Part shown: positions 1 to 64,000 of the stretch, one piece after another
How positions within the stretch are numbered: position 1 is the stretch's first letter
Layout of the letters: every line of letters starts with the position of its first letter
Source: Oopsacas minuta
Lineage: Eukaryota > Animalia > Porifera
Length of the DNA stretch: 64,000 nt
Direction: 5' to 3'
NCBI GenBank assembly: GCA_024704765.1
Contig: JAKMXF010000111.1
Span: 636,619-700,618 of the forward strand
Position numbers and translations under genes: made by a program
Notes under the pieces: generated by a model
Told to the model about the DNA's origin: nothing
Seen by the model: only the letters and a program-made list of their open reading frames with translations
Databases searched by the model: none

Positions 1-181
1 TTTCCTTTATAGTTTAGCTCTAATTTTTGTATTTTCTTATATTTTATTTTTGTGTGTTCTCCACTTATAATATTTCAAAAATTTATAATTATTAATATAC
101 TTCCATATACGGATACATTATTAGCTGTGGGTGGTCTAGTTAGTTACAAGTGAGTACAGGCAGAATACATTAGTTTGACTG

Positions 182-2478
182 ATGGCAGACACACAAACAA
201 GTAGACCTGAGATTAATGGTAGTGTCCATCTATCCTCACAACCTGAGACAAGCATCATAAGACAAGGTTAGTATTTATAATAATTTCTAGAGAAATTGTT
301 TTACCCTCTCTTCTTAAAAGTGAGATCCATCCTCTACTGGGAGAACACTTTCACAAGTATCTGCTCTCTCCTGATAACATTAATGATATTACAAACCTTC
401 AGTTTCTATCCTGGTATACATGCTACTCTGTTAGTACTGTTGGGAAGTTACACAGCATCTCTGCTATTTATTTTATCCTTCATCATATACTGTGTAGTTG
501 TTGGTAGAGAGCCACACAACCCATTCAAGTGAGCTACAGTTATTTATTAAACGAGCCTTTGGCTCGTCGCTTCGCGATGAACTCCGCGCATTGCGCCTCG
601 AGGTATTCAACAGACAAACAAACAGACAAACAACAATTGAGATGTAATAACATTGATGTTGTTTACATTATTCAGACTCAGCATACTCGATTACCCCAGT
701 ATAGTCGTTGAAAGCATGATTCTACCTCAATTTTGAAATTTGTTTACTTTATATTCATAAAAACAACAATAAATTTACATATGATTAATCCAAAAGTGTG
801 AAAATCGGATTCAGCATTTTCGAAATTTTTAATAAAGTTTTATTGAATTATTATTACTTCCTTGATAAACACGATAAATACATAGTTATGCTACAATTTC
901 AAAATTGCATACCATAAATCCTTCCTTGACAACACGGACAAACAAACAAACAAACAACAATTGAGATTTAATAATATAGATATTTAAATGGTAATTGTAA
1001 TCTCTATCCCTTTCTTGTAGTGTTTGGCTATCTGACTTTAAAGTAAATACAGGTTGGGTAAGTTCTCTCATTTCTTAACTCAAATAAATACAAATAAATT
1101 CAATAAACTCTTTCAGATTTTGAATCAGCTGGGTATACTATTAGACTTGATATCACCTTATTTTGTATCTTCATTGAGACTGATATTCTTCTTCAATCTC
1201 AAAGATTCCTTAACAGTAAGTTATCTCTGTTAGGTTATACCAGACCCTGGAGAATACATTAATAGTATTATATTATAGGTAATGACACTACTTTGGATTA
1301 TGAGTTATTTTTCATCCTATATCTCTCTGCTAGAAATAACCTACGTAGGTTAGTTTATTTATTAAAACTGTGCTCATTAACTCTAATATATTCATTGTTT
1401 AAAGTGCAATTACATAGTTTGATTATACATAGCTCATTAGCACTGTAATGAGAATCAGACTCATAAAGTCTACATTCCAACTATCACTACAGCTTCTAGA
1501 GTCCCGGGTTGGTACTCGTGGTGTTAAGATCTACACTAAGACAGGTGACAAGGGTTTAACAAGTAATTACGTTGGAACTAGAATACCGAAAGATGACGTC
1601 ATTATAGAAGCATTGGGTACTACAGATGAGTTATCGTCTCAGATAGGCTTAATACGTGCCTGGATAGCCAGGATACACTCCAACAATTCAGATCATCAAC
1701 ATCTCCTCAAACTACTAGCTAGTGTACAGTGTCATCTACAGGATATAGGTAGTCATATCGCTACGCCTCCTGACACAAAGCAAGCTGGTACACTGCCTGT
1801 ATTCAAACCAGAGCTTGTGAAAGAGCTGGAATATGAGATAGACGAGATGACGTCACGACTCCCTCCTCTCAAACACTTCATCCTACCAGGTGGTGGAATG
1901 ACAGCTGGGTATCTACATGTAGCTAGGTCTGTGTGCAGGAGATCGGAGAGGAGGGTTGTGCCCTTGATACGAGCGGGAGAACTGTCTGATAGAGTAGGCG
2001 TTTATCTGAATAGACTCTCTGACTTCCTGTTCACTACAGCTAGGTGGGCTTCTCATATTGAGGGAGAGAAAGACACTATTTATAAATAATTCCAATTATC
2101 CATGGTCTATTATCTATCTCATTATTAAATCTTAGAAATTGTTTGGTTTTTGATAAGTTTCACACTTTCTCAGCTGTTCTATTAATATTTATGTCTCCTT
2201 TTCTTACAGCTGTGTTTATCCTCTTCTCTGTACCAAAGACTTATGAAATGTACCAGGTATGTAGTAACGATATTTGTAGTTAAGTAAAATATTTCTGTAC
2301 ACTTTATATGCTATTTTGAAGGAAAAGATTGACAAATTCATAAAGAACGCAATGGACCGAATAGAGCAATTACATAAACGGTAAAATTATGGTAAATATT
2401 TTCATTTTCCTACTGTTACTGATACAATATATTCTTAGATATTTGGCTACATTAAAGCCTGATGAAAAGACTGAATAG
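182..2478 (+). CDS. RTN: Reticulon (short RTN-C-like), 8 exons: 182-266, 291-529, 1021-1057, 1117-1215, 1279-1348, 2210-2256, 2322-2380, 2439-2478
   Basis: Hand-spliced GT-AG exons stay in frame and give reticulon-domain motifs: LYWENT...HNPFN, LRLIFFFNLKDSLT, VMTLLWIMSYF, VFILFSVPKTYEMYQEKIDKF. These match LYWRD..HPF, LRRLFLVDDLVDSL, SVPVIYERHQAQID. Confidence 0.88.
551..752. repeat. ~200 bp dispersed repeat, copy 1 (terminal hairpin plus ACAA/ACAG microsatellite), in reticulon intron 530-1020
   Basis: High similarity to the reverse complement of 20429-20630. Perfect hairpin ACGAGCC-TTT-GGCTCGT at 551-567. Confidence 0.9.
935..980. repeat. Partial third copy of the 551-752 repeat
   Basis: ggacaaacaaacaaacaaacaacaattgagatttaataa matches the microsatellite-aattgagat segment of copy 1. 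Confidence 0.7.
1448..2089 (+). CDS. MMAB: Cob(I)alamin adenosyltransferase (PduO type), intronless, nested in reticulon intron 1349-2209
   Basis: KIYTKTGDKG, GTTDELSSQIG, FILPGG, LHVARSVCRRSER, YLNRLSDFLFTTAR motifs; N-terminal presequence-like segment. Confidence 0.96.
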   Translation: MRIRLIKSTFQLSLQLLESRVGTRGVKIYTKTGDKGLTSNYVGTRIPKDDVIIEALGTTDELSSQIGLIRAWIARIHSNNSDHQHLLKLLASVQCHLQDIGSHIATPPDTKQAGTLPVFKPELVKELEYEIDEMTSRLPPLKHFILPGGGMTAGYLHVARSVCRRSERRVVPLIRAGELSDRVGVYLNRLSDFLFTTARWASHIEGEKDTIYK

Positions 2479-2696
2479 AAACTCTACAGTTATTATCAAG
2501 ATTACTATATATATTGCTGCAATATAATATAATGTTACTACTAATATGATATGTTGATGAACAACTTTTACTTTATTGCTACGCAGGATCAATTAATTCC
2601 GAACTTGTGAATTCAATTTCACTTTGTTCTAATATTTAATATTATCACACCTTTATGGAGATAACACTTTATTTACTAATTCATTAGAGGTATTTT

Positions 2697-4456: not shown

Positions 4457-4465
4457 TATCTCACA

Positions 4466-8512: not shown

Positions 8513-8627
8513 CTAATAATTATATTAACCTTAAGAACTGTTACTAAATATCTGTATTGTAAATTTGTTTATTTCCTTTATTAATTAGTTATACATTAGT
8601 CTTATTGATTTCCATCAGATAGTTATA

Positions 8628-12817: not shown

Positions 12818-13281
12818 ACATCATTTGAGTAGTTCACATCCTCTAGCGTAATATACATATGCTTATACATAATGAGTGAATAGTTGTTACAATGTATGTT
12901 AATTATTAAACAAATATACTTGGTAACATTGGATCTTATGATACAGCTGTTCCCAACCTTTATCACCCGTTGACCCTATACCATTTTTAACACATTCTGT
13001 GTACACCCTCTCAAAGACTGCAAAACAAATTTTGAGATCCTGTGGACCCCCCGCTGTTGTTATGAACCGCTATTATAATGACTTCCATCCCCTTAGAAAT
13101 ACAAATCAATATAATACAGTATTTATTTAATAACAGTGTAAGGTACTCGTGTCAGTCACTAACAAATTGAAGTGTGAAAACAATTTACAAATCCATCTGG
13201 ACAATTCGAATATTAAATTCAAAGTTATTCCTATTTCCTAATAATTTGTTCATTTATACGCTCTGAGCAGAGTTAGTTCAA

Positions 13282-14490
13282 TCATTGCCAGATAGACGAG
13301 TAGTTACCACATAATCCCAATTGTAGAGGGCCTCCTGCTATGTACATTTTCCTGTTGTCTGGACTGTAAGAGTGCGAGTATATTGCATTGGGTAGTTTTG
13401 GTATAGAGTTAAAGAATGTATAGTAATTGTTATCATGACGGATCCATCCCTCACTGGTTCTCAGAGCTAAATGTTCTCCTTCATCTGTTTCTAGGTACCT
13501 CCATGCTCTCAGGTCGAAAAAGTACACGTTACCACGTCCTGTGCCTATTGAAAGAATATGCTCATTGTATGCGATAGAGCGGACACCCCAGGACTTGTCT
13601 ATTGATACTACTTCCTTGCTGTTATCACTACTTGGCCATTCACGGGGATCGAATAGAGTTACTGCCTGTCTACTGCCAATACCGAATATATTATGTTCTG
13701 GGTTGTACTTCATGCAAACATTCTCTGCACAATGAGACAGGTCATATCTGTATATTGGTTTCAATAACTCTACATCCCAGAGGCTGAGTGCTGCTCTACT
13801 GTATCCTGTCTGCAGTGAAGCAAGTGCATTTAAACGTTCGCTGTATACTAAGGATCTTATCTTGTCTCTAGCATCTTCTGGTTTATTCTCCAATGAAGCA
13901 ATTGGTTCTATTGTAGGACAATGTTCACTATATATTGAATTATAGTTGGAAAAGGTTTGTGAAGCGTCCCACAATTGCATTTGTCCGTCATTAGCCCCTG
14001 TAATGAGTACAGAGTTCTTAAGCCATGTGAGAGAGAATATCCACTCTTGATGTCCAACTCCTAGCCCTAGGGGACTGAGATCTGGTAGCGAGTAAAAAGC
14101 AACATCTTCAGGGAATCCACCAGACACAGCTAAGCATGTATTACTCTCATTTATTCCTATAGCATGGATTCCTCTGGATACGAGATGACTGTTACTGCAC
14201 TGATCTTGATATGAATCTCCACTGTCATCTCTCTTGGAAGGGAAGAGAGTAGGGATTTGATATGTGTAGTTAGTCTCTGAATCTACTAGCCACAACTTGT
14301 TGCATTTCGTTCCGCAAAGAATATTTCTGTTATCCAGCCAATGTGAGCAAAATACCTTGTTACTATCTCCTAGATCATTGCAATACTCCTTCAGTGTAGA
14401 AACGTTTTTCTTAGCTGCCAATTCCTGAATTGATTTTGAGATACCAGTAGAATTTCTAAAGTTTCGAGATGTGAGCCAATCACTTGCCAT
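13282..14490 (-). CDS. DCAF12: DDB1- and CUL4-associated factor 12 (WD40), intronless
   Basis: NKVFCSHWLDNRNILCGTKCNKL, GIHAIGIN, GVRSIAY, IGTGRGNVYFFDLRA, AGGPLQLGLCGNYSSIW. Confidence 0.93.
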   Translation of the reverse strand: MASDWLTSRNFRNSTGISKSIQELAAKKNVSTLKEYCNDLGDSNKVFCSHWLDNRNILCGTKCNKLWLVDSETNYTYQIPTLFPSKRDDSGDSYQDQCSNSHLVSRGIHAIGINESNTCLAVSGGFPEDVAFYSLPDLSPLGLGVGHQEWIFSLTWLKNSVLITGANDGQMQLWDASQTFSNYNSIYSEHCPTIEPIASLENKPEDARDKIRSLVYSERLNALASLQTGYSRAALSLWDVELLKPIYRYDLSHCAENVCMKYNPEHNIFGIGSRQAVTLFDPREWPSSDNSKEVVSIDKSWGVRSIAYNEHILSIGTGRGNVYFFDLRAWRYLETDEGEHLALRTSEGWIRHDNNYYTFFNSIPKLPNAIYSHSYSPDNRKMYIAGGPLQLGLCGNYSSIWQ

Positions 14491-14794
14491 TCAAATTGTT
14501 TAATAATATTAGAAATGTTTATTATTAATTTGGCCTATTTATTTATAACGAATCACTGCTATCTAGCATGCCACTTTCAAAGGTTGTTACCCTATTAAGC
14601 TGATTCATATACATTGGTCTATTTCGTTTCAGCCACTTTTGAATTATTTAATTTATGATTCATTTACTACCGTGCGATATCAGATTTTGATTTACATTGG
14701 AATTTACAGTTACATAATGTGTCTTATTAGTTGTACAATCATTCGCACATGCTCAAACTAATCACATTTTTGATGCAGTTCTTATTTTCACAGA

Positions 14795-15823: not shown

Positions 15824-15991
15824 TACTACTGGAATATTCTAGAACTCTTTGTAAATATTCTTAGCTTTGTGTATATTTTGTGAACTTATACTTTGTATTA
15901 GTATTTGATATTTTCACTTACTGTAGTATCCTTATCTACTAAATCTCTCCTATAAGATTCCTCATATTATTCGCATAGCTATTGTGTAATT

Positions 15992-42456: not shown

Positions 42457-42567
42457 GTTGTATTTGCACATATTTTGTTATTAGCAAGGTAAATCGGATA
42501 ATATCTGTAACAATATAGGAATTGTATTTACATTTTATAATAATATACTGTTTGTTGTCATAGCTTA

Positions 42568-48464: not shown

Positions 48465-48621
48465 ATAGGATAGTTTGTGTATTGAGGATTAATACATTGA
48501 GAGTTAAGATGTGATTAATTGGCTGAAAACAGTTACAAACGTTAATCTCTGATAATATATAAACTCAATTTAATCTTCTTAGAATTATAAGGTATAACAC
48601 AAGCTGCTAAGATCCTCTAAA

Positions 48622-49032
48622 ATGCAACCTGAAGACTCTTCTGTTCAGAATAACGAGTTCATATTCCCTAATGGGGATATGTATGTAGGAGAGTATATAA
48701 AGCGAGTTGATAGATCAGTTATGAGACAGGGCTCTGGGGTATACACATCACATACAGGGTTCAAGCTAGAGGGTATCTGGGTAAAGGACAAGATGGAAGG
48801 GAGGGGCAGAGCTAGCTTCAAATCAGGAGCAGAGTATAAGGGGTTATTCGTAGACAGCAAGTTCTCAGGAGAGGGAGTATATACGCTACCTAATGGGGCT
48901 ACAATAGAAGGAAAATTTGATGGAAACAAAATAACAGGATCAGTTGTATTCACTGATAAGAATGGCTTGAGATGGTTAGGGGAGTTTAATGACCTGAAAA
49001 ACATTGAAACTTTAGAACTTGAATTAACATAA
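48622..49032 (+). CDS. MORN2: MORN repeat-containing protein 2
   Basis: FIFPNGDMYVGE, GIWVKDKMEGRG, SGAEYKGLF, YTLPNGA..GKF, GLRWLGEF. Confidence 0.85.
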   Translation: MQPEDSSVQNNEFIFPNGDMYVGEYIKRVDRSVMRQGSGVYTSHTGFKLEGIWVKDKMEGRGRASFKSGAEYKGLFVDSKFSGEGVYTLPNGATIEGKFDGNKITGSVVFTDKNGLRWLGEFNDLKNIETLELELT

Positions 49033-49091
49033 TCACTCCCATATGAGTATCTATACTATTATTAATCTCTCTTATATTAGATATCTAATCC

Positions 49092-51062
49092 ATGTCAGCT
49101 GCTCAAATAAAATCACTGAAATCTGACCTATCATCTCTCCAGGAACTTATCCCTGAGCTCTGTCAAACAGCTAAAACAACAGCCCCCAATATCAATCAGT
49201 GTCCTTCTAGGCTATACCCCACTAAGCTAGCTAGAGATATAATTCCTACAGCTGATACTGAGTATGTAGGATTATTAGAACTTACTATTGATAGATTACA
49301 GTATCTTATACAGTGTGTAGTATGTATCCTCGGGTCTCAATCTCCTCCCCTCTCCCTCCTCTCAGCTGTTAAGAAGCTGTCGTCACAACTAACCAGTCGA
49401 GATTCCACTCAATCCCTTTCAGACAACCCCATCTCTTACCCACAAGCTAATAACTCTACATACAAGTGTGTAGCTTCCCAGACCTATGAGACATCATTTA
49501 CTAACTGTATGAATTGTATAGAACTACAAGATGTATTATTACATGTAGCTTGTCTATTCACAGAGGGATTACAACCTCTAGGCTGTGAGAGTAGAGTTGA
49601 CCAGTGTGTACTCTCCTCTCTTGATCTGGACGCCTCTGATTTATTGCCCCCTCGTAAGTGGGCTGGTCCCATGGAAGAGGACGTGAAGTCATTTTCTACT
49701 CACCTGATAAATATTCAAAAGAGAGCTAATGAACTAGAGAAGAATGTTAGAGAGTTGAGTGAGCGACTCTTTGATAAATCCTCTGAGATCAGGGAGCTAC
49801 TTACTCAGCTGTCTTCTGTCAAGAGTGAATCTGTCAAATCAGCTGATCAGATGAGGAATGAGATGGAGCAGGAGAGAGAGGAGAGGAAGAGAGAGACACA
49901 CTCCATCTCAGTAGGCAGAGAGCAAGAGAGGATCAGAGCAGATAAACTACAGCATGAGATCAGCTGTTTACGACAAGACTTATCTTGTAAGTCTGCTACA
50001 ATGCTAAATACAGAGACTAGAGTAAGAGATTCAGAATCTGCTCTTAAGAGAATACAAGCAGAGAACACAGCAAGTATTGATAAAGTAATTAGTCTAGAGA
50101 AAGAGCTACAGGAGAGTGAGAGAGGGAGAATTGATACACAAGCTGATCTAGAAGCTAAGACTGTAACAGTTAAGAAGTTAGAAGTACAAGCCAGCTCTCT
50201 CCGACAGCATGAGACTAAGCTACAGAACAAGTGTGATTCTCTGTTAGGACAAGTATTAAGTATGGAGGAGGAGTTATGTAGATCTCAACAGGACCTTACT
50301 GAGAGTGTTAGAGAGAGAGAAGAGTTGAATAATCAACTGAATTCTACTCGTACAGAGATATATGAGCTGAATAGAGAGCTCTCTCAACAAGTTAATACTA
50401 TTACTAAGCTACAAGATAGTGATTCCTCGTATTCAGAGCTTGTAGATAGTCTTAAGGATAAGTTAAGTAATGCTAGAGATAAGTTAGAAACAGCTGATGA
50501 GAGATGTAGACTCCTCATGCGCTTCTCAGACCCCACAGATACCAGTGATCCATCCCAGACACAAGACCTGATATCAGCTAATAGTATTAAGATACTATTA
50601 ATAGAGGAGCAGAACTCTAAACTCAGACAACAGAGCTTAGCTTGTTCTCTCAATAGTGGTAACAGGACTGAGTTATTAGTTCCTACTCCTCTTTGGCATA
50701 TTCAGGATCTGTCTACTATGAAGGAGAGATACTCACGACTATCTCAAGAGGAAGGGACACTGTCTAATGAGTTAACACAATCTGCTAGTTACCTCGCAGA
50801 TAAGGAGGAAAAGTCTCGTCCTAAATCACTAGGAAGGTGTGGCCAGCTGTTAGAAGCTCTTTCACGCGCCAGATCATATGAGGATGCAGAAACGGATCAC
50901 AGGTTGCAGAAGGATAACGTTACTCACGTATGGTCAGAGGGACTAGACGGTACAGAGAGTAATGTTATTCATAAGATAGGACAGATATACACATGTGATA
51001 TCTGTGACCAGATGTTTCATGACCAATCTAGCCTCATATCACACGGCAGTCATTGTCATTAA
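49092..51062 (+). CDS. CCDC157: Coiled-coil domain-containing protein 157-like
   Basis: N-terminal IKSLKSDLSSLQ...LLELTIDRLQYLIQ, SQTYETSF..C..C, long coiled coil, LETADERCRLLMRF. Confidence 0.75.
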   Translation: MSAAQIKSLKSDLSSLQELIPELCQTAKTTAPNINQCPSRLYPTKLARDIIPTADTEYVGLLELTIDRLQYLIQCVVCILGSQSPPLSLLSAVKKLSSQLTSRDSTQSLSDNPISYPQANNSTYKCVASQTYETSFTNCMNCIELQDVLLHVACLFTEGLQPLGCESRVDQCVLSSLDLDASDLLPPRKWAGPMEEDVKSFSTHLINIQKRANELEKNVRELSERLFDKSSEIRELLTQLSSVKSESVKSADQMRNEMEQEREERKRETHSISVGREQERIRADKLQHEISCLRQDLSCKSATMLNTETRVRDSESALKRIQAENTASIDKVISLEKELQESERGRIDTQADLEAKTVTVKKLEVQASSLRQHETKLQNKCDSLLGQVLSMEEELCRSQQDLTESVREREELNNQLNSTRTEIYELNRELSQQVNTITKLQDSDSSYSELVDSLKDKLSNARDKLETADERCRLLMRFSDPTDTSDPSQTQDLISANSIKILLIEEQNSKLRQQSLACSLNSGNRTELLVPTPLWHIQDLSTMKERYSRLSQEEGTLSNELTQSASYLADKEEKSRPKSLGRCGQLLEALSRARSYEDAETDHRLQKDNVTHVWSEGLDGTESNVIHKIGQIYTCDICDQMFHDQSSLISHGSHCH

Positions 51063-51170
51063 TGTATATCTCTGTTATAAACTCTAATATATATTGCATT
51101 GCTAATATTGACATTATAATTATGGGAGATTTGTGTGTTAAAGTTGTCTATAATTTACTATTAGTTCAGT

Positions 51171-54100
51171 ATGGACTGGCTACATTTCCTGGAACACAAC
51201 TACACCCCACTACAATTCAATTCTGTCCTAACCTCAAACACAGATCGTTTCTCTCTCATACATCTCAATTTCGGTGAGGTATATTTTGAGGATTTTGCAG
51301 TTATCTACTATCCAGAGGCCCGTAACGAGGATGAGATGGTTAAGCTGAAGCAACAAGGGAGACTTAAGTTATGCTCTGAGACTCTCCTATTCGTACCTCA
51401 TGACTCACTATCTCCTCTCATCAAGATACCTTACAAACACTGTGATACGCTATCTCAATGGAATGGAAAATTTCTTAAAAGCATTCAGCACTGTGTGTAT
51501 GTACGTGCTACAGAGAAGGTATTGTTACTAGAAGGGAATAACATAGGACCTTATGAGCAGGTTAAGAAACGGGAGGGATATCTGTTCCGTGTGTTATATC
51601 AGGATGTTACAGCTGTTCTGCCTAAGATACACCGGCTGTACACCATATGGCATCAACCACAAGGTAGAGTATATGAAAAATCCAATTTGAATGCTAATTA
51701 TATCATTTTATATAGATAAAAGAATACAAGAGACTCTGAGATTATCTCATGAACAGTTTGATCATATTCGTTTCCAAAGTATGTGGTTATCTAACTTGTT
51801 TGAGAAGATTGTGTTTGAGAAAGCTGGCCTCCTCGTATGCCCTATGATTGAGAATCCAGGTCGTATAGCTCTAACCAACAGCTATTTATACTTCCAGCCA
51901 CTCAACAATATTTATGCTGAGCCTGTCATGTCCGTCAAGCTGTCAGACCTAAGATTAGTAGAGAAACGGCGTTATCTACTCACTCATATAGGAATAGAAC
52001 TATTCACCAAAAAAGGTAATTACTGATTTTCCAGATTTTTCAAGTCGTATTTTGCACGAATTTCCCTGCTAATACACCCGAACTTACTATTGAGAAAATA
52101 TTTCAAAAAAGTTGCTATTAGGTGAATACATATTGCTAATAGACGAACATCACTGTATAACGTGTTTATATTCCTTGTTTATTAGATACAAGTATTTTCC
52201 TTGCTCTTGAGACTAACTCATTTCGGGAACATCTATACTCACTCATTCTCAAACAAGAAGACACTAAATTGGAGCTTTTACCGGAACTGACAGTTATGAC
52301 AGATAAATGGTCTTGTAAGGAACTGCCAAACTTTGAGTATTTAATGTTCCTTAATTTCAAAGCTAACAGGAGTTTTAATGATATCACACAATACCCAGTA
52401 CTACCATGGGTAATTACTAATTATGATGGAAAGAAGTTGGATTTGAAAGATCCTTCAGTGTACAGAGATTTATCTAAACCTATAGGAGCAATAAACGCTA
52501 ACAAGTTGGCCATTTTAAAGAAGAGATACAAAGAAATGCCTCCACCTAAGTACCTGTACGGTACTCACTACAGTACTCCTGCTTATGTACTGCATTTCCT
52601 AGTTAGAACAGCTCCGGAGTATTTGCTGTGTTTACAGGTGTGTTCATTATAATAAGGAAGCTTAAATTATTGTTATGTGAATGTGTATTTTAGGATGGAA
52701 AATTTGACTACGCTAATAGAATGTTTCACAGTATTAATGAGACATGGCAGCATGCTCTTACAGGACCCTCTGATGTTAGAGAACTTATTCCTGAGTTCTA
52801 CTTATCTCCAGGAGATTTCTTGCTTAACGATGCTCAGCTCGAGCTGGGGGTAAGGGACTCAGGAACTAAAGTCAATGACGTACAGCTGCCTCCTTGGGCA
52901 AATAACGCTCGTGACTTTACAGCTAAACTGCGAGAAGCCTTAGAAAGTGAGCATGTGACGTCACGACTCCACTTCTGGATAGATCTCGTGTTCGGTTACA
53001 AACAGAGAGGAGAAGAAGCAATCAGAGCTGATAATCTCTTCCACTACATTACATATGAGGGAGCTGTTGATATAGATCCTGTTAATGACCCAATTAAGCA
53101 GAACTCACTTAAAATACAAATTATGGAATTTGGACAAACTCCCACCCAATTATTCATAGAGCCACACTCTTACTCTAAGCTATATAACAGCAATACATCT
53201 ATTGATAAGGTATATTCAACAGTTATGCCGACTGCTAATAACAACAACAACATAGCTATTACTCCTGTTATGGTATCCTATAATGATTGGGATGGAATAT
53301 CTCAACTCAGTTTTGAGATATCATACAAACTACATAAAGACAGTATGACAGCAGTCAGCACTCTGCCAAAGCAGAATTCTATCGTATCAGTATCTAAGGA
53401 CCATACACTGAAAATATTCTCCCTCACTAGTCAACAACAGACCAGAAGCACTGTGCTATCCAGTATGGCCCTCTCTTCTTGTCTAGTAATGCCTAATGAG
53501 GATACTATTGTTGTAGGATCATGGGATAACAGTATATACTTCTACTCTGTTGAATATGCTGATGTGTTGCATTGTATGCCTGCACATGACAGTTCTGTCA
53601 CTTGTCTGGCCTGGAGTAGTAATATACTCGTTACAGGATCATGGGATACTTCTGTTAAGGTCAGTATTCAATTGTTATATATAGTGGCTATTAGTTAATT
53701 GTATATTTTCCAGATATGGGATTACACCCCTACCAAAGGGGCGGGACCAATCAACACCCCTCAGATCCGAGGAGATCTTGATCATGACTGTGAGCTAACC
53801 AGTGTTGATATAGATAGTACTGGTGCTCTGCTAGTATCAGGCTGTGCAGATGGTAGTGTATGTCTTTGGGATGCACAGTCTATGGAGAAGATAGCAGAGA
53901 AGAGAATTTCTGCTACTTCTGTATGTTCATGTCTATTCAGTCCAGACAGCAAGTCTCTTGCTGTATGTACAGAAGATGGTATGATACATATATACTCAGT
54001 AGCTGAGGGACTACCACTGATTACAACCAGGAGTCCAGGAGAGCAGTGTAGCTCTATGTTATGGAATGGAGAGTATATTCTATGTGGTGGAATGAGTGGG

Positions 54101-54250
54101 ACATTATCAATACTCTCACTAAAATCTACAGTCACACTAGCAAAGAGAGATGCACATCAATCTGCCATCAGTGCTATTTCTGTAAATAATGACATGCAAG
54201 TTGTAGTTACCGCATCTACTGATAGGAATGTATCTGTTTGGAAGTTTTAA
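51171..54250 (+). CDS. NSMAF: Protein FAN (GRAM, BEACH, WD40), exons 51171-51663, 51716-52015, 52186-52637, 52694-53659, 53714-54250
   Basis: RFSLIHLNFGEVYFEDF, NRSFNDITQYPVLPWVI, YGTHYSTP, DVRELIPEFY, EFGQTPTQLF, WD40 repeats; all introns GT-AG and in frame. Confidence 0.95.
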
Positions 54251-54450
54251 CAATTGACTCTAAGAACCGTTGATATGCTGACAGAATACAGTTGAGAGAA
54301 ACGCCCGGTCCTTATTAGTTACTCCGGATATTGTTGTATATTTTGGTACATTTCACAAGTCCTATTTTTGTGTATAGAATTTATATAATTTCTATACAGG
54401 CTAGTGTTTAATATTTCCAATAATTGTAATTATCATTTCTTTGTCTGTTT

Positions 54451-55342
54451 ATGGATAGAATTGTAGCTAGCTCGATGACAGCAGTAATCGCATTGAAAGA
54501 TTTTGAGGTTAGCAATTTCCTATCTTATTCATTTAATAATTATCCTATATGACATCTCTAGGAGTTGTCGCATAATTCTCTTATAGGTTATTGTCCACAG
54601 CAAAGTCGCAAAGGCAGGATGGTCTCTCCTGAAGAGATTGCTTTTCTTCTTTCCCGGAGATTGTCAAAATACTGAAGCAGCTATGAAGGCTGCTAAATGT
54701 CACCAATTCATAACATGGTCATATGAGAATACGCTTGATATATTAGCCAATAGATTTCCAAATCGTATTATCTGTCTATGTAAGCCGAACTATCTCCATT
54801 TAAATAATTTTGCTTGTTATGATGCGTTCGTTGAAAAGGCGACTACTTTCGGTGATCCTAAATACTCTCCCTCAGTCAAGAGCTTTACTTCTCTATCTTG
54901 TTGTATCGATACACTTTGTAAAGAGAAATATATCGCAGAGTGTATAGATGAAATATCTGTAATGGGATTCAGTAAAGGTTGTATTGTATTGAATCAGCTG
55001 GTATATGAAATACAGATGGGTTTTCAAGATGAGAATATTGCTCAGTTTATTTCCATGCTTAGAGAATTCTATTGGTTAGATGGTGGACATAATGGTACTG
55101 CTGAAATATGGATCAGTGATTTAAATATACTTGAAAGTTTCGCGAGAATTAATCCAAGAATTTACATTGGTGTAACTCCTTACCAAATGAAGTCAGTGGT
55201 TAAATCCTGGGCTGCTAAAGAGAAAAGGAAATTTGTTGAGAGACTAGAGAGTGTGGGTGTGAAAGAAGTTGAAGTTGTTGAACACTTTTTCGATGCGCCA
55301 CCATCCCTAGAAAATCACTTTAATATTTTAAGCAATTTTTGA
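54451..55342 (+). CDS. C2orf69: UPF0565 protein C2orf69 homolog, exons 54451-54507 and 54587-55342
   Basis: FFPGDCQN, NRFPN, GFSKGCIVLNQL, YWLDGGH, VTPYQ, PPSLENHF. Confidence 0.92.
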
Positions 55343-55466: not shown

Positions 55467-58400
55467 GGAGATTTTGATGATAAAGAGTATGTAGAGAGGT
55501 TAGCTAGAGTGGATAATAATGTGAATCTCGGGCCTCTAAAAAAGCCAGAAGAATTTTGCCCAGATGTGAGTTACTACTGTAAAATATTTTTAAGCGAATG
55601 TTATACATTTGTATTTCTTCCCACATCAGGCACTTTTGAAATCTTTCCAAGAGAGTATAATTGTATTGAACCAGCTAAAAACGAAGAATCAAAAGAAAGT
55701 AGATAAGATTGAGAAGCAGTGTTATATTATTGCAAAGGAACATGATGATAACTTGAAAAAGCAGAGATTAATTTTTCAGGTAGATTCTCTACCAATCCTT
55801 AATAATTACTAATTATACATATAGTATACTCTCATTATAACGAGGGCTCGGGACCTCGGATTCATTTTGTTTTCTGCGGGGGTAAAATCAATTACTTTCA
55901 AGCTATAGGGGATAATATCACTTCGTTTTAATGACGATTTCATTATACCCGACTTGGTTATCACGGGAGTTTACTGTACTTCTTCCTATCAGGACTCTTT
56001 CAGAACTTATGAACAACTCGAGTTAAAGGTCAGAACTATGGCTGCTAAAGTTGTTCATCTTGGAGATCAACTGGAAACTGCGAATAAGAAAAAGAATAAG
56101 ACCGATGAAGCTCTACAACTGATAAAGTATTTTAATATATTTCAGAGGAATGAAGAGAATGAAACTAAACTATTTTCAAACAATTCACAGGCAAACCTTA
56201 CGCTATATTACATTATCTGTCTGTTCTCCTATTGTTGTTTATAGCTGTTTATTAGGTATTTGAAGCAGCAAAAGTACTAGACATCCTTACCTCTTTCGCC
56301 ACTGACCTTCCTGACAAGTAATTAATTAATATTATACATTGCTAGACAATATGTAACTAATATATACTTCTATAGATATACAGAGGTTAGGAGTAGAATC
56401 GAAGGTAAGATTGTGTGTGTTTATTACAGATTTGTATCATTCCCATTATTTCAATCAGCTTAGCTAATTACCCTTCTAGCCAAATCTCGAGATACCGAGA
56501 AGAGTTTATTGAAAGAATTCCACCATGCTCACACTCACAATGATACAGAACGAATGCGAAAATGTGGACAAACTCTATCTCTCTTCCCAAAGGTAATTAA
56601 TATCTATAACAGTGGCTGATTATCAGACTTAGTTAATGTATAAATAATTGCTGTCTTTCAATTGAACTTTAATCAATTGATGTATTTCTTAATACTTCTC
56701 ATTACGTGTGAGCTGGCTTCAGGTAGTATTGTTGTTCTACGAAGTGATTATACACTAACAGCCTACTGAGGTTAAGAATCTTCCCATGTGCTCTTTATGC
56801 ATTTGAATGCTTTAAAATCAGTTTTTCAAAAATTATACAAATTAATCGCGGTTATGAATTTCAGAAATTTGAGGTTATTCTTTCGATCACTTTCAAATGA
56901 GATTAGTGTATTCTTCAGGCTATCAGTTCCGATATATCTAACAGCTCTATGCACTGAAACAATTGGTATACTTTCTATTATATTTGCTGGGCAGTTTGAC
57001 GATCAGAGCGTATCTCTCTCTGCTGTAGCACTCTCTCAAGCTTTTATTAATATTACCGGATATTTTCCTATGCTAACATTAACCTCAGCAGTAGACAGGC
57101 TATTCACTAAATCAGATGTAATAGGTAGGAACAAATACACAGGATTGTTGCTACAACGCAGTTTGCTTGTTAACGCATACTTAATGTTACCTATTGCGTT
57201 TATATGGCTGAATACAGAGAATATTATGCTATTACTCAGACAGCCTCCAGAGCTATCAGCACTAGCGGGAGAGTATGTAACCGTTTACATAGCTATTCTC
57301 CCTGCTCTCTGCGTATCATCAGCTGTTGTCAAGACACTACAATTACAAGAAGTAATAATACCTTCCCTACTGATACTCATGTCTGCTAATTTTATAGAAG
57401 TTGTAATCGTATATCCACTCGCGTATTTCACGGATATTGGAGTACGTGCATTTGCTTTAGGCCCGGTTATAGCATTTTATTTTATAGCGATATCTCACTG
57501 TATGTATCTGCGCTGTGTTAAAATATGGAAAAGAATTTGGTGTGGATTTTCCTTCGAAGCATGGGAGAGCTGGTGTCAATATATTTGTTACGGGGTACCG
57601 TTGTTGTTAGTCAATCTACTGGAGATTGTTAGTATTCAGTCAGGTGCATTTATTCTTGGTATTGCATCTTATCAGCCAGTTGTTGACATTGGTATTCACG
57701 TGGTCGCGACTTGTATCAATTCTTTGATTTCAGTAAGCTGTATGTCTCTCTCATTAGCTACTTCTATTCGTCTTTCACAGCTCAGCTATGAGAGTCAGAG
57801 AAAAAGAATCAAAAAGATAGTTATCAACAGTTTAATAGCTATTATCATTATTTCACTATCTCAATCGGTTATCCTAGCTGCTGGTAGCCAGTTCTGGGGT
57901 AGAGTATTCTCCTCTGATCTCCGAGTAGCATCAGGCCTAGCTAATATATTATTTCTATTAGCTGCATATCATCCTTTTGAAGGTTTACTCATCCTATTTC
58001 AAGCTGTACTTAATGGTTTAAGAAGACACCATGTGAATAGCATATTTACATTATTTTTCTGTGTAGTCAGTTTCCCTATAGCTATCATTCTTGCTATGTT
58101 CTTGCCTGATCAAGCACTTGGATATTGGGTTGGGATAACCACCGGATACTTTACACGAATTGTTCTTTATATTGCCATTACAATTGTATACTTATCTGTT
58201 ATAAGCACTGTTTCTTATGCTCAGACAAGAATCAAAGAATCAACTCCACTCGTAGCTAATGATATTCCTCAACATACTGAGATTCCTTGTTATATATCTA
58301 CTGTTGGTGGTTTTGGATGCCTAAAATGGAAAATATTTCTTCTGAAGATTTTGTTGTTATTGGTGTTAGTAATACCATTCATTCCGCTAATAGGATGTCG

Positions 58401-61400
58401 CTACAGTACATACAAGAAAGAAATCTACAATATTAGTTATATACAAGCTCCTCTTGATGTTTTCTGTTTGATATTTTTACCCTTCAACTACACTATCCCT
58501 CTCAACCAAACGATTTAGTTTTACGGTTTAAATATACTTATATTTTCTAATTTCTAAATAATTCATATCATTACAATATGCAACGACTACGTAATAAATG
58601 ATTTGTGGATAGATATCATGTGAACTGGATTACAGTCATATGGCAGTAAGACTATTGTGAATTATGTAATACCCTAAGTTGTAAACCGATGCTATCCAGG
58701 TGCAGTATCATTGAAAATACACAGTATGTATTATATCATATTTTGTATACCAATTATCAACGTCAACAAAATAATAGTAATGACCATGCAATTGACTATT
58801 ATTTGTAAATATGAATGTAGTTAATTCAGTACTAATAATTACACATTATGAACAACATCCAGACTTAGTCTTCCCATGTTCTAACTCAACATGAGACGTT
58901 ACACCGATATTCCCATTCGCCTCTTCTTGCTCGAGTGCATTTCTTGCTATTGCTTCGAAAGCTTGCTCGACATTAATTGCTTCTTTAGCGGAGGTTTCGA
59001 AATAAGGGGTGTTGTTTTTAGAATCACACCATGCTTGTGCGCGTCTTATAGGGACGCCCCGAGTATCTAGGTCAACTTTGTTCCCTAACACAACGAATGG
59101 GAGCTTTTCTGGATACCTAGGGCTAGCCTGAATCAAAAAATCATCTCTCCATGATTCTAGATTCTTAAATGAGTTGGGTTGTGTTACGTCATACACCAGC
59201 ACACAACAATCAGCTCCGCGGTAGAACGCCACGCCAAGGGACTGAAAACGCTCTTGTCCAGCTGTGTCCCAGATCTGTAGAGTAACCAATCTGTCATCTA
59301 TCATTACTTCCTTATTGAGGAAATCTGCTCCAATTGTTGCCTTGTATTTATTCGTAAACTTCTTCTTGACATACTGGTTCATTAGTGAGGTCTTACCTAC
59401 ACCAGAATCTCCCAGAATAATAACTTTAAGTAGGACATTTCTTCTTGAACTCATAGAATGTGCCTTGGCTAATAGACAGTCTAATTTCGAGAATTGACAA
59501 TACTAATATTATATGATGTATTGGCAGTTATTAATTTTATTGTTTCAACGCCTATTATTTATCTCTCTTTCCCTTTATTCACGTTATATATTATCTTTTA
59601 GAATTATGAGAGATGTATACAGGATTTTATAAACCAAGGCACAAAGGTAGGCGAATAATTATATCTTAGGGAATAATTAGATATGTTTGAACCTAGTGTA
59701 TAGCTGCCCCTCCCTGTTAGAACCCAAGTATCCTCTCTACACTATTATCCAATTCCAAATACATATTTGTAAATTTAACGAAGATAGGCAACAGGAATTC
59801 TGTATCATCTAACCAGTGGGATATTCAGCACATTATTTCACAAATAATAATTATACTTAATCAATATTCAAGTCACTGAACTGGAGAACTATATTTATTG
59901 CTGTAGTATAATATTTTGTACATAGTAGTGCCTTTTGAAGATATTAAGTAACTAGCATATTATGTTACAAATATCATACACAGTATTGAACTACCTCTAC
60001 TCCCACTCGAGTAGAATTCTAATAGAATTGTTTGTTAGTGAATGAGACACACTGTCTTTAATATTTCTATCCACATGATAGCCATTTATATAAAGCGGAA
60101 TTTGTATGTATTATCTCTGTTTCCATCAATTTTATATTATTTCCTAAAGTTAAACTCACACGAATTCTAATCCATGATTTTGCAATGATTTTTTTGTAAT
60201 TTTCAGTTTGGATCATTTTCTAGATTGAATTTAAAGGGAAGATTACCCTCTTCAATCAGACCACACAACTATGTCATAAGGTTTGTTTTCGTAGAATTAT
60301 TTCTTTGCAATTTATTTATCGGCGACAGGCAACATAGTTGAATACCGAGATAGCATCCGGCGCCTACCTGTGCTCCATTTAATATACAAATTGATGTATT
60401 GTTTGCTTGAAAGAATAACAAATTATAAATTATCTTCTATTTTGCAAATTTCAGATATTTGCCCCAGCGCTTGGACTCAAATTTTTAGAAAATGGAATTG
60501 TCCAATGTAGTTTATACGTTTATATTTTTTTATAATTCAATAGTTGTACTCTTTCTATCTCGCTAACTACTCTTATATATTTGTTGTTTACGTGTATAAT
60601 TAGCACTGACGATATTCAATATATAATAGTAAATTAATTATCCAACATCAGGCATGTCTAGTTCCTCGGATTCCCCAACCAATGTTCGTAGCTTTACTAA
60701 ACAGAACTTTTTCAATTTCAAAGCATCAGTTATAAAGCCAGCAGGTACACTGTATTCTGATGCTAATTCTTCTCCCAACAATAAATCCACTAATAACAAA
60801 TCACAGGGATTTTCATTTCTCAAACTTGATTCATCTCTTACAGCAAGTGAGATATTACCTGTAGTTGGAGATAATGTAACTACAAATCCTAATCTAAATG
60901 CTAAAGAGATTTCTGATATAAATCCACTTCAACATACAGAACCTAAAGCTTCGAGGAAAGATACAGAAGAAGATTCACATACTTCAAAAGATCCAAAAGT
61001 ATACGTGTTCGGTCAGAAAATAGAGGCAAGGGTTGTTATCCACGAAGCAGAGGCTAGTGAGCCACCAAGCCAGGACGTTAAATCCAGTGCTACAGACGGA
61101 ATAATTCCTAGCGACAATGCTAAACCTCTACTAGGTTCTTTACCTGTACAGAAAGTATTCACAGGGGAAGAGGGAGAGAGAGTAATAGTGGAGATATCCT
61201 GTAAACTGTTTGTGTTCGATTCTAAGAACAAGACATGGCATAGCAAAGGTAGGAACATGTTACACCTGAATGAAGATCCTGATTGCGAGCATAAATCTAG
61301 GATCATTTGTAGGGCGCAAGGCAATCAATTAGTACAGCTGAACTCTCCTATATGGGCTGAAATGCTGTGTGAGCAATCTAACCCAAACTCAGTAAAGTTA

Positions 61401-63081
61401 TCTGCTAATCTAGAGAATGATGGTATCCGTGTAGTGCTGATTCAAGGAGAGAAGAGAGATATATCTAATCTGTTCTCTGCTCTCGAAACAAGAATACTTA
61501 ACTGTAACAATCATAAGGAAGCAACAGCCAAATCTCAACAATCAGACGAAATTGACCTAATCGATACACCAGATATCCCATCTCCAAGAACTCCGACCTC
61601 CCAAGAAACTATCTCTAACAAACGCCCTCTCTGCTCAAAACGATCCACTGTGGAACGAGACGAGCCTAAAGACAATCCTGTCCTAACCAACTCTACTCGA
61701 GACCCTGAGGAAGATGAAGCACAGAATTCATGTAAAAGATCTAAAATTAGCGAGTCTTCCAATCAATGAATTACCCTACTTATTAACATTAGATTAATAC
61801 AACACTTCGCGCTAGAGCTTTCTTCAGTCATTTCTAATTTAATCAGAATATGATAATACGAGCTATGCTTTCCCAATAAAAGTTTCATTGATTGTGTCCT
61901 AATTAACAAGATTCTTTCTACACACATTTTACGATTGATATTTAACAAATATTTTTTGTGTAAATTAATACAGAAAAACAATAAAATCTCTTTCAAGATT
62001 TTTTAATATTACAACTGAGTTGTTCTCTTTTAGACACAGAAAATAATTCTGGATACATTCGATAATCCGGAACAAGTAACTTCTGCTTTTGTGACTCAAG
62101 TATTTGACAAGATAATCAAGGTAAGCCCAATACAAAATATGATAATGGTAATCAGTGAAACCTCCACAAACGGAGCCTGTGGAAAAGGGGAACTTAGAAA
62201 TCCGCTCAATTTTTCACTCCTTGGCACGGAGTAAAAGTAGCGCGGATTCCTAGTCCCATACAAATGAACCTCCACAAAAGGCGGAATTTAGCAGAAACCG
62301 GGTAGCATTTTCGGCGTCCTGACACTCAGTTTATGGCGGTTACACTGTATATTCAGATCTTATTTTCTATTAGACGCATGTAAAAGATGAGTTGAGGGAC
62401 ATCAATAAAGAGACAGACATAGACGAGTATCTGTCAAAGCTGTCAGATCTATATGACAAGTATGTAACATTTATTCTATTATTTGTTATGTATTATTTTG
62501 ATAACATTGTATAGGACAACATTATTGGGTCGAAAGTTAGTTGATTATGAAATGATTCAGGATACACCTACTGCCACCAAACAAATAAAGAACCTCTTCT
62601 ATGACTATCTACATAATTATGCTGAGTGAGTTCATGAACTTTTTTATTTTCCCATGTTTTTAAACTCATAATTTTAGAGAGGAAATCCATAATTTCGGTA
62701 CAAAAGGAAGGACTGAATTAGAAGAGTATTATAAGGTTCTATTTGACACTACAGGAATGCAGAAGAAAGCTACAACAACTTCAAGCGGAGGCTACAAACC
62801 TAGGAGGGAGACAATAAGAAATGTTACTGTAGATGTCCTATTCGTTTCTCAGGATTTTATAACTAACATTCTCAGTGCAACTAAACAGTGTATCAACCGT
62901 TGTAAAGTTGTACGTAGCAGATTTTTTATTATTTGTCTATCTCAATATCATCTAATTTATTCTTGTTACTAGCTGTGTAATCCTAATGAACTCTCTGTTA
63001 CTGTCAAGTTAATATACAAGACAATGATGGAGCTGATATGTAGAGATCATCTGGACTATGCAGTTAAACTCGCACTCACAG
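55467..63081 (+). CDS. EXOC5: Exocyst component 5 (Sec10), partial: first exon unresolved, gene continues past the window. Exons include 55467-55565, 55630-55779, 55993-56190, 56256-56317, 56376-56404, 56480-56592, 59602-59646, 60224-60280, 62034-62120, 62374-62459, 62515-62625, ~62678-62909, ~62972-63081
   Basis: Spliced translation is colinear with Sec10: [101 protein letters not shown]. Confidence 0.92.
55822..55976. mobile_element. pogo/Tigger-like MITE flanked by TA, in EXOC5 intron 55780-55992
   Basis: Left (t)agtatactctcattataacg versus right-end reverse complement cagtaaactcccgtgataacc; TA on both flanks. Confidence 0.6.
56797..58518 (+). CDS. MATE family (SLC47-like) transporter, intronless, nested in EXOC5 intron 56593-59601; start codon uncertain (56797 or 56854)
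   Basis: [59 protein letters not shown], ~12 TM segments. Confidence 0.92.
   Translation: MHLNALKSVFQKLYKLIAVMNFRNLRLFFRSLSNEISVFFRLSVPIYLTALCTETIGILSIIFAGQFDDQSVSLSAVALSQAFINITGYFPMLTLTSAVDRLFTKSDVIGRNKYTGLLLQRSLLVNAYLMLPIAFIWLNTENIMLLLRQPPELSALAGEYVTVYIAILPALCVSSAVVKTLQLQEVIIPSLLILMSANFIEVVIVYPLAYFTDIGVRAFALGPVIAFYFIAISHCMYLRCVKIWKRIWCGFSFEAWESWCQYICYGVPLLLVNLLEIVSIQSGAFILGIASYQPVVDIGIHVVATCINSLISVSCMSLSLATSIRLSQLSYESQRKRIKKIVINSLIAIIIISLSQSVILAAGSQFWGRVFSSDLRVASGLANILFLLAAYHPFEGLLILFQAVLNGLRRHHVNSIFTLFFCVVSFPIAIILAMFLPDQALGYWVGITTGYFTRIVLYIAITIVYLSVISTVSYAQTRIKESTPLVANDIPQHTEIPCYISTVGGFGCLKWKIFLLKILLLLVLVIPFIPLIGCRYSTYKKEIYNISYIQAPLDVFCLIFLPFNYTIPLNQTI
58846..59454 (-). CDS. RAB7A: Ras-related protein Rab7, intronless, antisense-nested in EXOC5 intron 56593-59601
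   Basis: [66 protein letters not shown]-terminal CCS prenylation motif. Confidence 0.97.
60654..61769 (+). CDS. RANBP3: Ran-binding protein 3-like (RanBD), intronless, nested in EXOC5 intron 60281-62033
   Basis: FNFK and YVFGQKI motifs; Ran[47 protein letters not shown]. Confidence 0.85.
   Translation: MSSSSDSPTNVRSFTKQNFFNFKASVIKPAGTLYSDANSSPNNKSTNNKSQGFSFLKLDSSLTASEILPVVGDNVTTNPNLNAKEISDINPLQHTEPKASRKDTEEDSHTSKDPKVYVFGQKIEARVVIHEAEASEPPSQDVKSSATDGIIPSDNAKPLLGSLPVQKVFTGEEGERVIVEISCKLFVFDSKNKTWHSKGRNMLHLNEDPDCEHKSRIICRAQGNQLVQLNSPIWAEMLCEQSNPNSVKLSANLENDGIRVVLIQGEKRDISNLFSALETRILNCNNHKEATAKSQQSDEIDLIDTPDIPSPRTPTSQETISNKRPLCSKRSTVERDEPKDNPVLTNSTRDPEEDEAQNSCKRSKISESSNQ
62153..62347. mobile_element. 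pogo/Tigger-like MITE in EXOC5 intron 62121-62373
   Basis: TIRs cagtgaaacctccacaa versus reverse complement cagtgtaaccgccataa; right flank TA; internal copy aacctccacaaa. Confidence 0.7.
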
Positions 63082-63198
63082 GCAAGTTCATACATCAATA
63101 AATATGAATATGAAATAATGAATTGTTGGATAACCGGAATGTCTGGATCCATTTCTCTACCTATCTATTATTCTATTATCAATTGACTTAATCTATGA

Positions 63199-64000
63199 AT
63201 GAGTCGCAACAAACATAACAAACAAGTTGCTTCTAGAAAGAGTACTCCTGCTCAGCTTCCTAATATTTGTATATTTCAGTTGGGATCGTCTGATACAGGA
63301 GAGGAACTCCCTAAACATGGTGTATATCTTTATTCACACTCCTCCTCTCCCTATCTTCTCTGTGTCTCACTGGATAAGCTACTAGTGATCGACAGTTCTG
63401 ACAGAGAGCTGTATGCAGAGTATAAAGCAACTGAGGACATGTTTAGCTCAGTAATAGAATATACAGGTCTCATATTGGTAGGCAGTGTACTAGGTTATGT
63501 ATATTCAATCAGTTTAGCAAACTTCCATTGCAGTCCTCCCATACATGTCCATGATGGTTCTGTTATTCAATTGATAGCTCATCCAGTAGAGAATACATGG
63601 ATTGCTAGTATTGGCGGAGACGGGTATCTGAAGCTGATAAATATGCAAGATGATATGAGCAAGTTCAAACGAGTACACGACAGGTTCTTACTTCAGCTAA
63701 AGATTTCGGGGGAAGCTAGTGCTATGTCATTCTCTCCTCAAGGAGATTGGTTGTTGACCAGCTACGATAATGGAATAAGAGCATGGGAGATTGAGAGGAA
63801 GAACTTGAGCAAGGATAAGCGGTTCAGAAAGACAGCTCCTCCTTTCTCTGTTCAGTTATATGGTAGTAAATTCCATCAGTCTACAGTGGAGCGTATCGTG
63901 TTTATAAGAGATGACGTAGTAGCTTCTAAAGACAAGATAGAACAGTGTGTCCTATTGTGGAAGTTTGACATTGATGCAGACGTATGGCGTATGAGTAGTA
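63199..64000 (+). CDS. WD40-repeat protein, EED/ESC-like, 3' truncated by the window edge (absent from the ORF track)
   Basis: Uninterrupted frame of 267 codons from ATG 63199: HDGSVIQLIAHPVENTWIASIGGDGYLKLIN, SFSPQGDWLLTS, FHQSTVERIVFIRDDVVASKD..CVLLWK. These resemble EED HGNAINELKFHP...SKDHALRLWN and IHRNYVDCVRW..ILSKSCE..CWK. Confidence 0.75.
   Translation, partial: MSRNKHNKQVASRKSTPAQLPNICIFQLGSSDTGEELPKHGVYLYSHSSSPYLLCVSLDKLLVIDSSDRELYAEYKATEDMFSSVIEYTGLILVGSVLGYVYSISLANFHCSPPIHVHDGSVIQLIAHPVENTWIASIGGDGYLKLINMQDDMSKFKRVHDRFLLQLKISGEASAMSFSPQGDWLLTSYDNGIRAWEIERKNLSKDKRFRKTAPPFSVQLYGSKFHQSTVERIVFIRDDVVASKDKIEQCVLLWKFDIDADVWRMSS

Follow-up and report, generated by a model that had tools for sequence, protein, structure and literature searches.

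Introduction

In this article, I describe a stretch of 64,000 nucleotides (nt) of DNA (64 kb; the window, numbered below from its first letter) from the glass sponge Oopsacas minuta (GenBank assembly GCA_024704765.1, contig JAKMXF010000111.1, positions 636,619 to 700,618 of the forward strand), and discuss where the mRNAs of its closely packed and nested genes begin. Spliced-leader (SL) trans-splicing is real at two neighbouring genes of the window, a GH43-like single-exon gene and the intron-containing gene ASPG (asparaginase with ankyrin repeats). The reading that I favour, and to which I give a probability of roughly 0.6, is that of a compact and conserved window in which the leader is added at AG dinucleotides before ATGs and in which the two guests covered by RNA, a guest being a gene nested in an intron of a host gene, look like separate transcription units.

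A leader on two neighbouring genes

The RNA evidence comes from four sequencing runs that were compared, as assembled contigs, on 12330-18329 (6 kb), a segment that holds internal controls in the form of one minus-strand gene, one gene after a divergent gap, one host and two guests. Run X4 is RNA-like, with four GT..AG joints, a depth of 300-5000 in genes and of 17-27 in two intergenic bins, and runs X1 and X3 are DNA-like, with flat depth, the stretch in one or few contigs and no joints. Run X5, from another organism (95-99% alike), was rejected as a measure of expression; its holes may be divergent non-coding DNA below the likeness cut-off, and an argument from its guest-to-host ratio was dropped because the run is unusable for expression. 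Transcript contigs sought with exact proteins of the window yielded at most the genome record and added no further RNA ends. All RNA results given here are thus cleaned assembly contigs of one run, X4, over 6 kb, and the features to which they lead are the following.

14777..14778, + strand: trans-splice acceptor AG, the upstream alternative of the GH43-like gene; loose letters AAAAAACTTA before 14776, which with the genomic CAG give ...AAAAAACTTACAG joined to 14779
14792..14793, + strand: trans-splice acceptor AG, 1 nt before the ATG at 14795; loose letters AAAAAACTT before 14790, which with the genomic ACAG give the same leader, joined to 14794
14795..15823, + strand: GH43-like single-exon gene, leader-spliced; open reading frame (ORF), Pfam Glyco_hydro_43 exactly at the cut-off, RNA depth 1300-2700
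15977..15978, + strand: trans-splice acceptor AG of ASPG, 13 nt before the ATG at 15992; 18 loose letters TCTTCATAAAAAACTTAC before 15977
15979..21345, + strand: ASPG host; RNA joints, Pfam Asparaginase, Asparaginase_C and Ank on exon pieces, 3' end near 21345 estimated from ORF pieces
16040-16097, 16189-17313, 17453-17513, 17755-17815 and 17900-19494, + strand: RNA-confirmed introns of ASPG, from GT..AG joints and a loose end

Three X4 loose ends, among the loose ends listed, fit one non-genomic leader ending ...TCTTCATAAAAAACTTACAG, which has its junctions directly behind the AGs at 14778, 14793 and 15978 and is joined to 14779, 14794 and 15979, respectively 16, 1 and 13 nt before the ATG. 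Each of these AGs is a canonical 3' acceptor with 10-11 pyrimidines in the preceding 15 nt, and the start codon is in each case the first ATG after the acceptor. The known 20 nt of the leader contain no ATG, and allowing as many as 3 mismatches they are matched nowhere in the 64-kb window; breaks of the contigs at -14 and -21 hint at leader variants. At ASPG the leader letters sit on a contig (depth 620) that also carries the joints 16038>16097 and 16187>17313, and a single contig thus shows trans-splicing at the host's 5' end together with cis-splicing across the intron that contains the guest HMT. Since the GH43-like gene, which comes first after a divergent gap, receives the leader too, a leader does not mark a gene as a downstream cistron. 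A preliminary description of this window, made from its letters, had predicted a shared non-genomic SL at ten listed AGs; RNA reached two of them, and the prediction is borne out at 14793, and no leader was seen at 16284, where the HMT contig begins.

Acceptor-like sites ahead of start codons

The same list of ten AGs before start codons proved sound as a description of the DNA, AG being present at or within 1 nt of every coordinate, and the eight sites at which the letters of the DNA are the only evidence are 1440, 8617, 25516, 38594, 41196, 42562, 49080 and 60651, among them this one:

8617..8618, + strand: acceptor-like AG 9 nt before the INTS2 ATG

More generally, a YAG with at least 8-9 pyrimidines in the preceding 15 nt lies no more than 15 nt upstream of 15-17 of 29 start codons and of 16-27% of control ATGs, the controls being ATGs in non-coding DNA (p about 1e-4 to 1e-5, with pyrimidine and distance thresholds picked after seeing the data). 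The enrichment is weak when any YAG within 25 nt upstream is accepted (22 of 29 start codons and 57% of control ATGs, p=0.03). An acceptor matrix trained on automatic intron calls was dropped as too noisy, and the simple pyrimidine count with control ATGs was used instead.

Other glass sponges add to this picture. Further glass-sponge-like assemblies in ENA have Mb-scale contigs that carry homologues of HMT, the CCDC157-like gene and the GH43-like gene (53-74% identity); these are DNA-like contigs and serve here for synteny and not for 5' ends. Loci L004, L005 and L129-L134 keep the gene order and strands of window 8.6-24 kb (INTS2+, V-ATPase G+, DCAF12-, GH43+, ASPG exons 1-2, HMT+, NHL+, ASPG C-terminal exons, adhesion GPCR-), and L006 and L007 keep those of 41-62 kb, from Rgp1 through EXOC5, with MATE and RanBP3 nested in both of the latter and Rab7(-) called in L006 only. 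In a Logan contig of a further species, with HMT at 50% identity, the ASPG GGT-motif exon lies just upstream of HMT. For 7 of 12 orthologue sets, namely GH43, ASPG, Rgp1, NHL-like, POT, MCM5 and CCDC157-like, all three species compared have a YAG no more than 25 nt from the ATG, with about 0.2 sets expected (p about 0.005); HMT was left out of this count, its start codon in the relatives not being clear. The spacers of L007 measure 77-945 nt and are mostly longer than in O. minuta (some 500-945 nt), and because the AG nevertheless stays beside the ATG, the acceptor is independent of operon-like spacing.

It is probable, site by site wherever the pyrimidine tract is good, that most of the other start-proximal AGs in the window are leader acceptors as well. 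Looking for an acceptor a few nt ahead of the ATG is a workable rule when the genomes of O. minuta and its relatives are re-annotated. In the mechanism that I propose, a leader ending ...TCTTCATAAAAAACTTACAG would be made elsewhere in the genome and joined, in many genes, to a canonical AG that precedes the start codon by 0-25 nt, and trans-splicing would discard the upstream outron. Such trimming may let the 5' region of a gene overlap its neighbour's 3' end or a host intron, and so permit tight packing on the same strand. A minority of genes, including DCAF12 and the NHL guest, would use plain start sites; neither appears to use the leader, because neither has a YAG within 25 nt of its ATG in any of the three species and, in agreement with this, the RNA of neither ends at an AG.

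The minus-strand neighbour can be described here, as it shares the divergent gap with the GH43-like gene.

13139..14496, - strand: DCAF12, ATG at 14490; abundant RNA ends about 6 nt before the ATG, not after an AG

A colinear low-depth contig at 14467-14805 (depth 16.7, about 17x vs about 2000x) spans the whole 300-nt divergent gap between DCAF12 and the GH43-like gene, separate from the high-depth DCAF12 gene body and upstream of the GH43 acceptors, and would be a candidate for the unspliced outron of the latter gene if it belongs to the + strand; no such contig lies upstream of the ASPG acceptor. In an alternative reading, the break at the DCAF12 5' end is a minor leader junction on the + strand, at the AG at 14467-8.

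Genes nested in host introns

The window holds seven single-exon guests in the introns of three hosts (ASPG, EXOC5 and a reticulon-like gene), six of the seven on the strand of their host, and this layout, which the preliminary description had drawn, holds up by RNA at ASPG, by Pfam at EXOC5 and by eye at the reticulon-like gene. The emphasis that had been laid on co-orientation does not: the + strand rate of the background is 21/24, co-orientation of 6/7 equals this regional bias (Fisher p=1), and it therefore carries no separate signal. The nested genes and the two hosts beside ASPG are these.

16284..17342, + strand: HMT guest transcript in ASPG intron 2; coding sequence 16300-17241, contig of 1059 nt at depth 396, Pfam S-methyl_trans
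18055..19334, + strand: NHL-repeat guest in ASPG intron 5; ATG at 18123, Pfam NHL
1349..2209, + strand: putative intron of the reticulon-like host, with MMAB (coding sequence 1448-2089, Pfam Cob_adeno_trans) and an acceptor-like AG at 1439-1440
55467..64000, + strand: EXOC5 host, which runs off the window end; Sec10_N at 55909-56241, Sec10_HB pieces flanking MATE, Rab7, RanBP3-like and WD40 (Pfam)
56797-58518, + strand: MATE guest of EXOC5
58846-59454, - strand: Rab7 guest of EXOC5
60654-61769, + strand: RanBP3-like guest of EXOC5, with an acceptor-like AG at 60650-60651
63199 onward, + strand: WD40 guest of EXOC5

For the fragments of the reticulon-like host, Pfam and Atlas gave no support, and its putative identity is a motif seen by eye. 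At ASPG the loose end behind 17899 matches 19495 onward, which is the host splice across the NHL guest, and the guests fill nearly the whole host intron, with a 5' flank of 95-155 nt. The nested genes are real, old and tightly fitted into their host introns, and the host is spliced cleanly across them.

The depth of X4 in 200-nt bins can be rebuilt to 0.1 from the listed contigs alone: bin 15930-16129 gives 95 nt x 619.7 / 200 = 294.4, bin 16130-16329 gives (58 x 619.7 + 46 x 396.2) / 200 = 270.8, bins 17130-17329 and 17330-17529 give 517 and 622.9, and bin 17930-18129 gives 75 x 277.6 / 200 = 104.1. The bin depths match the listed contigs, and therefore nothing else lies over the spacer, the ASPG introns or the guest 5' ends in those bins. 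No X4 contig covers 15930-15976 (47 nt at the end of the spacer between GH43 and ASPG), introns 1 and 3 of ASPG, 16188-16283 (the 96 nt of host intron 2 upstream of HMT) or 17930-18054 (the host intron upstream of the NHL guest), and the genes flanking these uncovered gaps stand at 280-2600x. The HMT contig begins at 16284, the G of ACAG and one of the AGs on the earlier list, and carries no leader letters; by the same depth arithmetic, no other X4 contig lies in 16188-16313. Had a leader ending in ACAG been joined at this place, the contig could have begun no later than 16281 and carried loose letters, and a leader contig should have shown itself, because leader contigs with only 30 aligned bases were reported at 14776 and 14790. 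The missing leader is nonetheless weak evidence, drawn from contigs. The RNA of the NHL guest begins at 18055 (..ggtatgct|TTGGC), and the preceding bases are not AG. Judged by these contig ends, HMT and the NHL gene look like separate units with 5' ends of their own, not released from the host pre-mRNA, and the RNA picture at guests and spacers as a whole is suggestive, not decisive.

At its 3' end, the HMT contig passes its stop codon and an ATTAAA (17257), crosses the host acceptor and continues 29 nt into ASPG exon 3 (to 17342), and the contig of ASPG exons 3-4 is deeper (801) than that of exons 1-2-3 (620); some HMT guest transcripts may continue into the host's next exon, RNA of unspliced host introns being absent elsewhere. 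At its 5' end, a block of 12-15 nt, CAGATTAGCTAA(C/T)A, is identical in the window (16282-16296), L004 (about 5969-5985) and L131 (about 3942-3958), within a host intron that otherwise cannot be aligned among the three. Two reading frames meet a stop in this block (TAG and TAA), among them that of the host, where the stop comes directly behind the AG; the block could be an acceptor, a start site or both. A fusion of ASPG exons 1-2 with HMT was considered and excluded, because in O. minuta and L004 the host frame runs into a TAG where the two would join. The HMT frame of two relatives (L004 5972-6256; L131 3945-3973), open from the CAG onward, reaches its first ATG only at about codon 85, and an AAT CTG G that lies in frame just upstream points to a non-AUG start. 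That the leader supplies the ATG which HMT lacks in these relatives was excluded as far as its known 20 nt go, since they contain a TAA in frame.

Weighing the alternatives

Several observations pull against the favoured reading and should be stated together. Contigs drop rare forms of RNA; the spacer from MORN to the CCDC157-like gene, at 59 nt, leaves little room for a conventional promoter; the HMT 5' end falls exactly on the predicted acceptor G, an odd coincidence for a plain start site; the two leader-bearing genes lie only 1.2 kb apart, and a shared distant cis exon would fit the data of this analysis; and the SL RNA gene was not found by Rfam in the window or by a search for the leader plus GT in metagenome contigs (0 matches) and in the relatives' loci (0). 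More than 80 scattered 16-mer matches to the leader were taken as chance, since the longer pattern matched none.

The first alternative is the model of the preliminary description, in which long precursors are cut into mRNAs by leader addition coupled to upstream 3' end formation, host introns serve as cistrons, and host splicing and guest release compete. Much of the layout invites such a model, as the spacers in an eight-gene same-strand run are 59-295 nt long, the ASPG acceptor follows the end of the main GH43 3' contig (at 15885) by about 93 nt, a distance that resembles nematode intercistronic regions, MORN is followed by a single AATAAA, which falls within the next coding sequence, and the clusters are conserved in other hexactinellids; at HMT, moreover, the 5' end sits exactly on a conserved CAG and the contig enters host exon 3 unspliced. 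However, the three uncovered segments at 15930-15976, 16188-16283 and 17930-18054 lack RNA amid well-covered genes, HMT has no leader contig, no AG precedes the point where the RNA of the NHL guest begins, the leader is found on the host itself and on the gene after the divergent gap, the L007 species keeps its AG before the ATG despite long spacers, and guest orientation is background strand bias. The notion of introns as cistrons with guest release is not supported in the nested locus, where the leader sits on the host, ASPG, and was seen on neither guest, and where no bridging RNA was seen. The notion of operons has short co-oriented spacers in its favour and met with no polycistronic contig at GH43-ASPG, which is one pair and a weak test, as contigs miss rare precursors. 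The RNA data over 6 kb weaken the cistron model without refuting it, and I regard it as doubtful. The stronger form of the proposal, that glass sponges have true operons, nested ones included, with host splicing and guest release in competition and the HMT leader gap an artefact of contig assembly, strikes me as improbable; if nested cistrons are true, they would represent a new way for protein-coding genes to share one transcription unit.

A second alternative gives part of the YAG-before-ATG signal a source other than splicing: some of the CAGs would be initiator-type start sites with very short 5' untranslated regions (UTRs), for which HMT would be the example, its contig beginning at 16284 with no leader and no upstream RNA. 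The local HMT sequences GGCAGAT in L004 and TGCAGTA in L005 fit the initiator consensus BBCABW, from which the O. minuta sequence departs at -2 only; O. minuta and L004 have TATA-like motifs at a distance of 26-34 nt upstream of the HMT CAG, and the conserved CAGATTAGCTAA extends downstream of the AG, where an acceptor does not need it. On the other hand, TATA-like strings are common in DNA of 63% A+T and the neighbouring CAG and TAG sites are proven acceptors; I consider this explanation quite unlikely. Finally, that the AGs are ordinary cis acceptors, with an unannotated upstream 5'UTR exon supplying the shared letters, is highly improbable: a cis intron in the 5'UTR would give the same genomic picture and the leader evidence comes from two neighbouring genes only, but the 20-nt leader is unmatched in the window, the same leader occurs on two genes at three acceptors, and SL trans-splicing is already documented in the class.

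Relation to known systems

Among animals, SL trans-splicing has a patchy distribution and a debated origin; given the early branching of sponges, the extent and precision with which glass sponges use it bear on whether operon-like packing and trans-splicing evolve together. The statement in the preliminary description that the process has been reported in hexactinellids is confirmed (PMC10282587, PMC7986045): it goes back to Douris et al. (2010), as cited in PMC7986045, and the genome of Aphrocallistes vastus has a leader of about 37 nt together with 2432 nested genes (PMC10282587). In the Aphrocallistes paper the annotation of O. minuta is credited with only 83 nested genes (PMC10282587), the SLIDR/SLOPPR paper notes that operons had not been reported in hexactinellids (PMC7986045), and neither trans-splicing nor nested genes come up in the genome paper of O. 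minuta (PMC10280926). The hexactinellid reports resemble the window in their short non-genomic leader at mRNA 5' ends and in a compact genome rich in single-exon and nested genes, and differ from this analysis in offering no map of acceptors relative to start codons. SL trans-splicing here is thus a better-resolved instance of an already reported glass-sponge process, to which this analysis contributes the sequence of the O. minuta leader over its 3' 20 nt, the exact place of the junctions (1-16 nt ahead of the ATG) and the conservation of the acceptor in other glass-sponge assemblies; a literature search for the leader letters returned unrelated primer matches only.

Three other known systems invite comparison, the first being the SL-resolved operon, of which the SL2 operons of Caenorhabditis are an example. 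SL operons of nematodes, tunicates and chaetognaths (e.g. PMC12460157) share with the window co-oriented, functionally unrelated genes and spacers of about 60-300 nt, and share with ASPG an acceptor just upstream of the downstream ATG, at which the leader is added. The window is unlike them in that no polycistronic RNA was seen, no operon-specific leader is known, the first gene in a run bears the leader, and spacer length varies between species.

The second comparison is with nested genes, which in flies and mammals lie predominantly on the opposite strand. As in other animals, those of the window are complete single-exon genes in an intron of a larger gene, and the host splices across them (by RNA, at ASPG); unlike those of flies and mammals, they are mostly on the host strand, a same-strand excess that follows the regional bias. 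The third is the analogy, made in the preliminary description, with host genes of snoRNAs and miRNAs, which also encode a product in a same-strand host intron; such hosts are defined by release of the product from the host transcript, whereas here both guests are without upstream host-intron RNA or leader.

Gene content and minor features of the window

From the ORF listing and Pfam, the window contains 31 genes, 27 on the + strand and 4 on the - strand (two-sided binomial p 3.4e-5), which reproduces the earlier count. The genes are mostly single-exon and densely set in DNA of about 37% G+C, and tRNA and Rfam scans of the window gave no match.

+ strand, first part: reticulon-like, MMAB, Homer-like, a 1348-amino-acid (aa) PMP-repeat membrane protein, INTS2, V-ATPase G, GH43-like
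+ strand, second part: ASPG, HMT, NHL gene, INO80B-like, AAA protein, GPCR, RPB7-like, 273-aa gene
+ strand, third part: Rgp1, NHL-like, POT, MCM5, MORN, CCDC157-like, FAN, C2orf69
+ strand, fourth part: EXOC5, MATE, RanBP3-like, WD40 gene
Minus strand: DCAF12, adhesion GPCR, TGF-beta, Rab7
41218..55342, + strand: run of eight co-oriented genes (Rgp1, NHL-like, POT, MCM5, MORN, CCDC157-like, FAN and C2orf69), with spacers of 59-295 nt and with acceptor-like AGs, recognised from the nucleotide sequence itself, at 41196, 42563, 49080 and other positions

Stop-to-ATG spacers between same-strand genes range from 59 to 427 nt, those from GH43 to ASPG and from the PMP-repeat membrane protein to INTS2 measuring 168 and 115 nt. 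The shortest separates the MORN stop from the CCDC157-like ATG (49032-49110), and because the sole AATAAA after MORN (49106) sits inside the CCDC157-like coding sequence, the mRNAs of these two genes probably overlap.

The public O. minuta models fuse neighbours with one another or guests with their hosts (window 24318-29640, 54451-58518, 60654-63101, 16300-17241 and 1448-2089), the fused models comprising a 1098-aa model, C2orf69+Sec10+MatE, RanBP1+Sec10_HB and HMT+asparaginase. MMAB and HMT are absent from them as separate genes, and the models of MCM5 and POT begin at internal ATGs.

Some local features deserve mention in their own right. The 1348-aa single-exon membrane protein at 4466-8512 carries Chlamydia polymorphic-membrane-protein (PMP) repeats, a domain unusual in an animal gene. 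A short multicopy element at 13004-13060, which occurs once in the window, shows a depth spike and loose ends on both sides in DNA and RNA runs alike. The adhesion GPCR has EEQLEIKK repeats at its C-terminus, encoded by a tandem repeat with a 24-nt unit (21651-21822; 7.2 copies, 92% matches). Another tandem duplication, perfect and with a 37-nt unit (28967-29054; 2.4 copies), falls in intron sequence beyond the AAA-protein exon whose end is near 28905.

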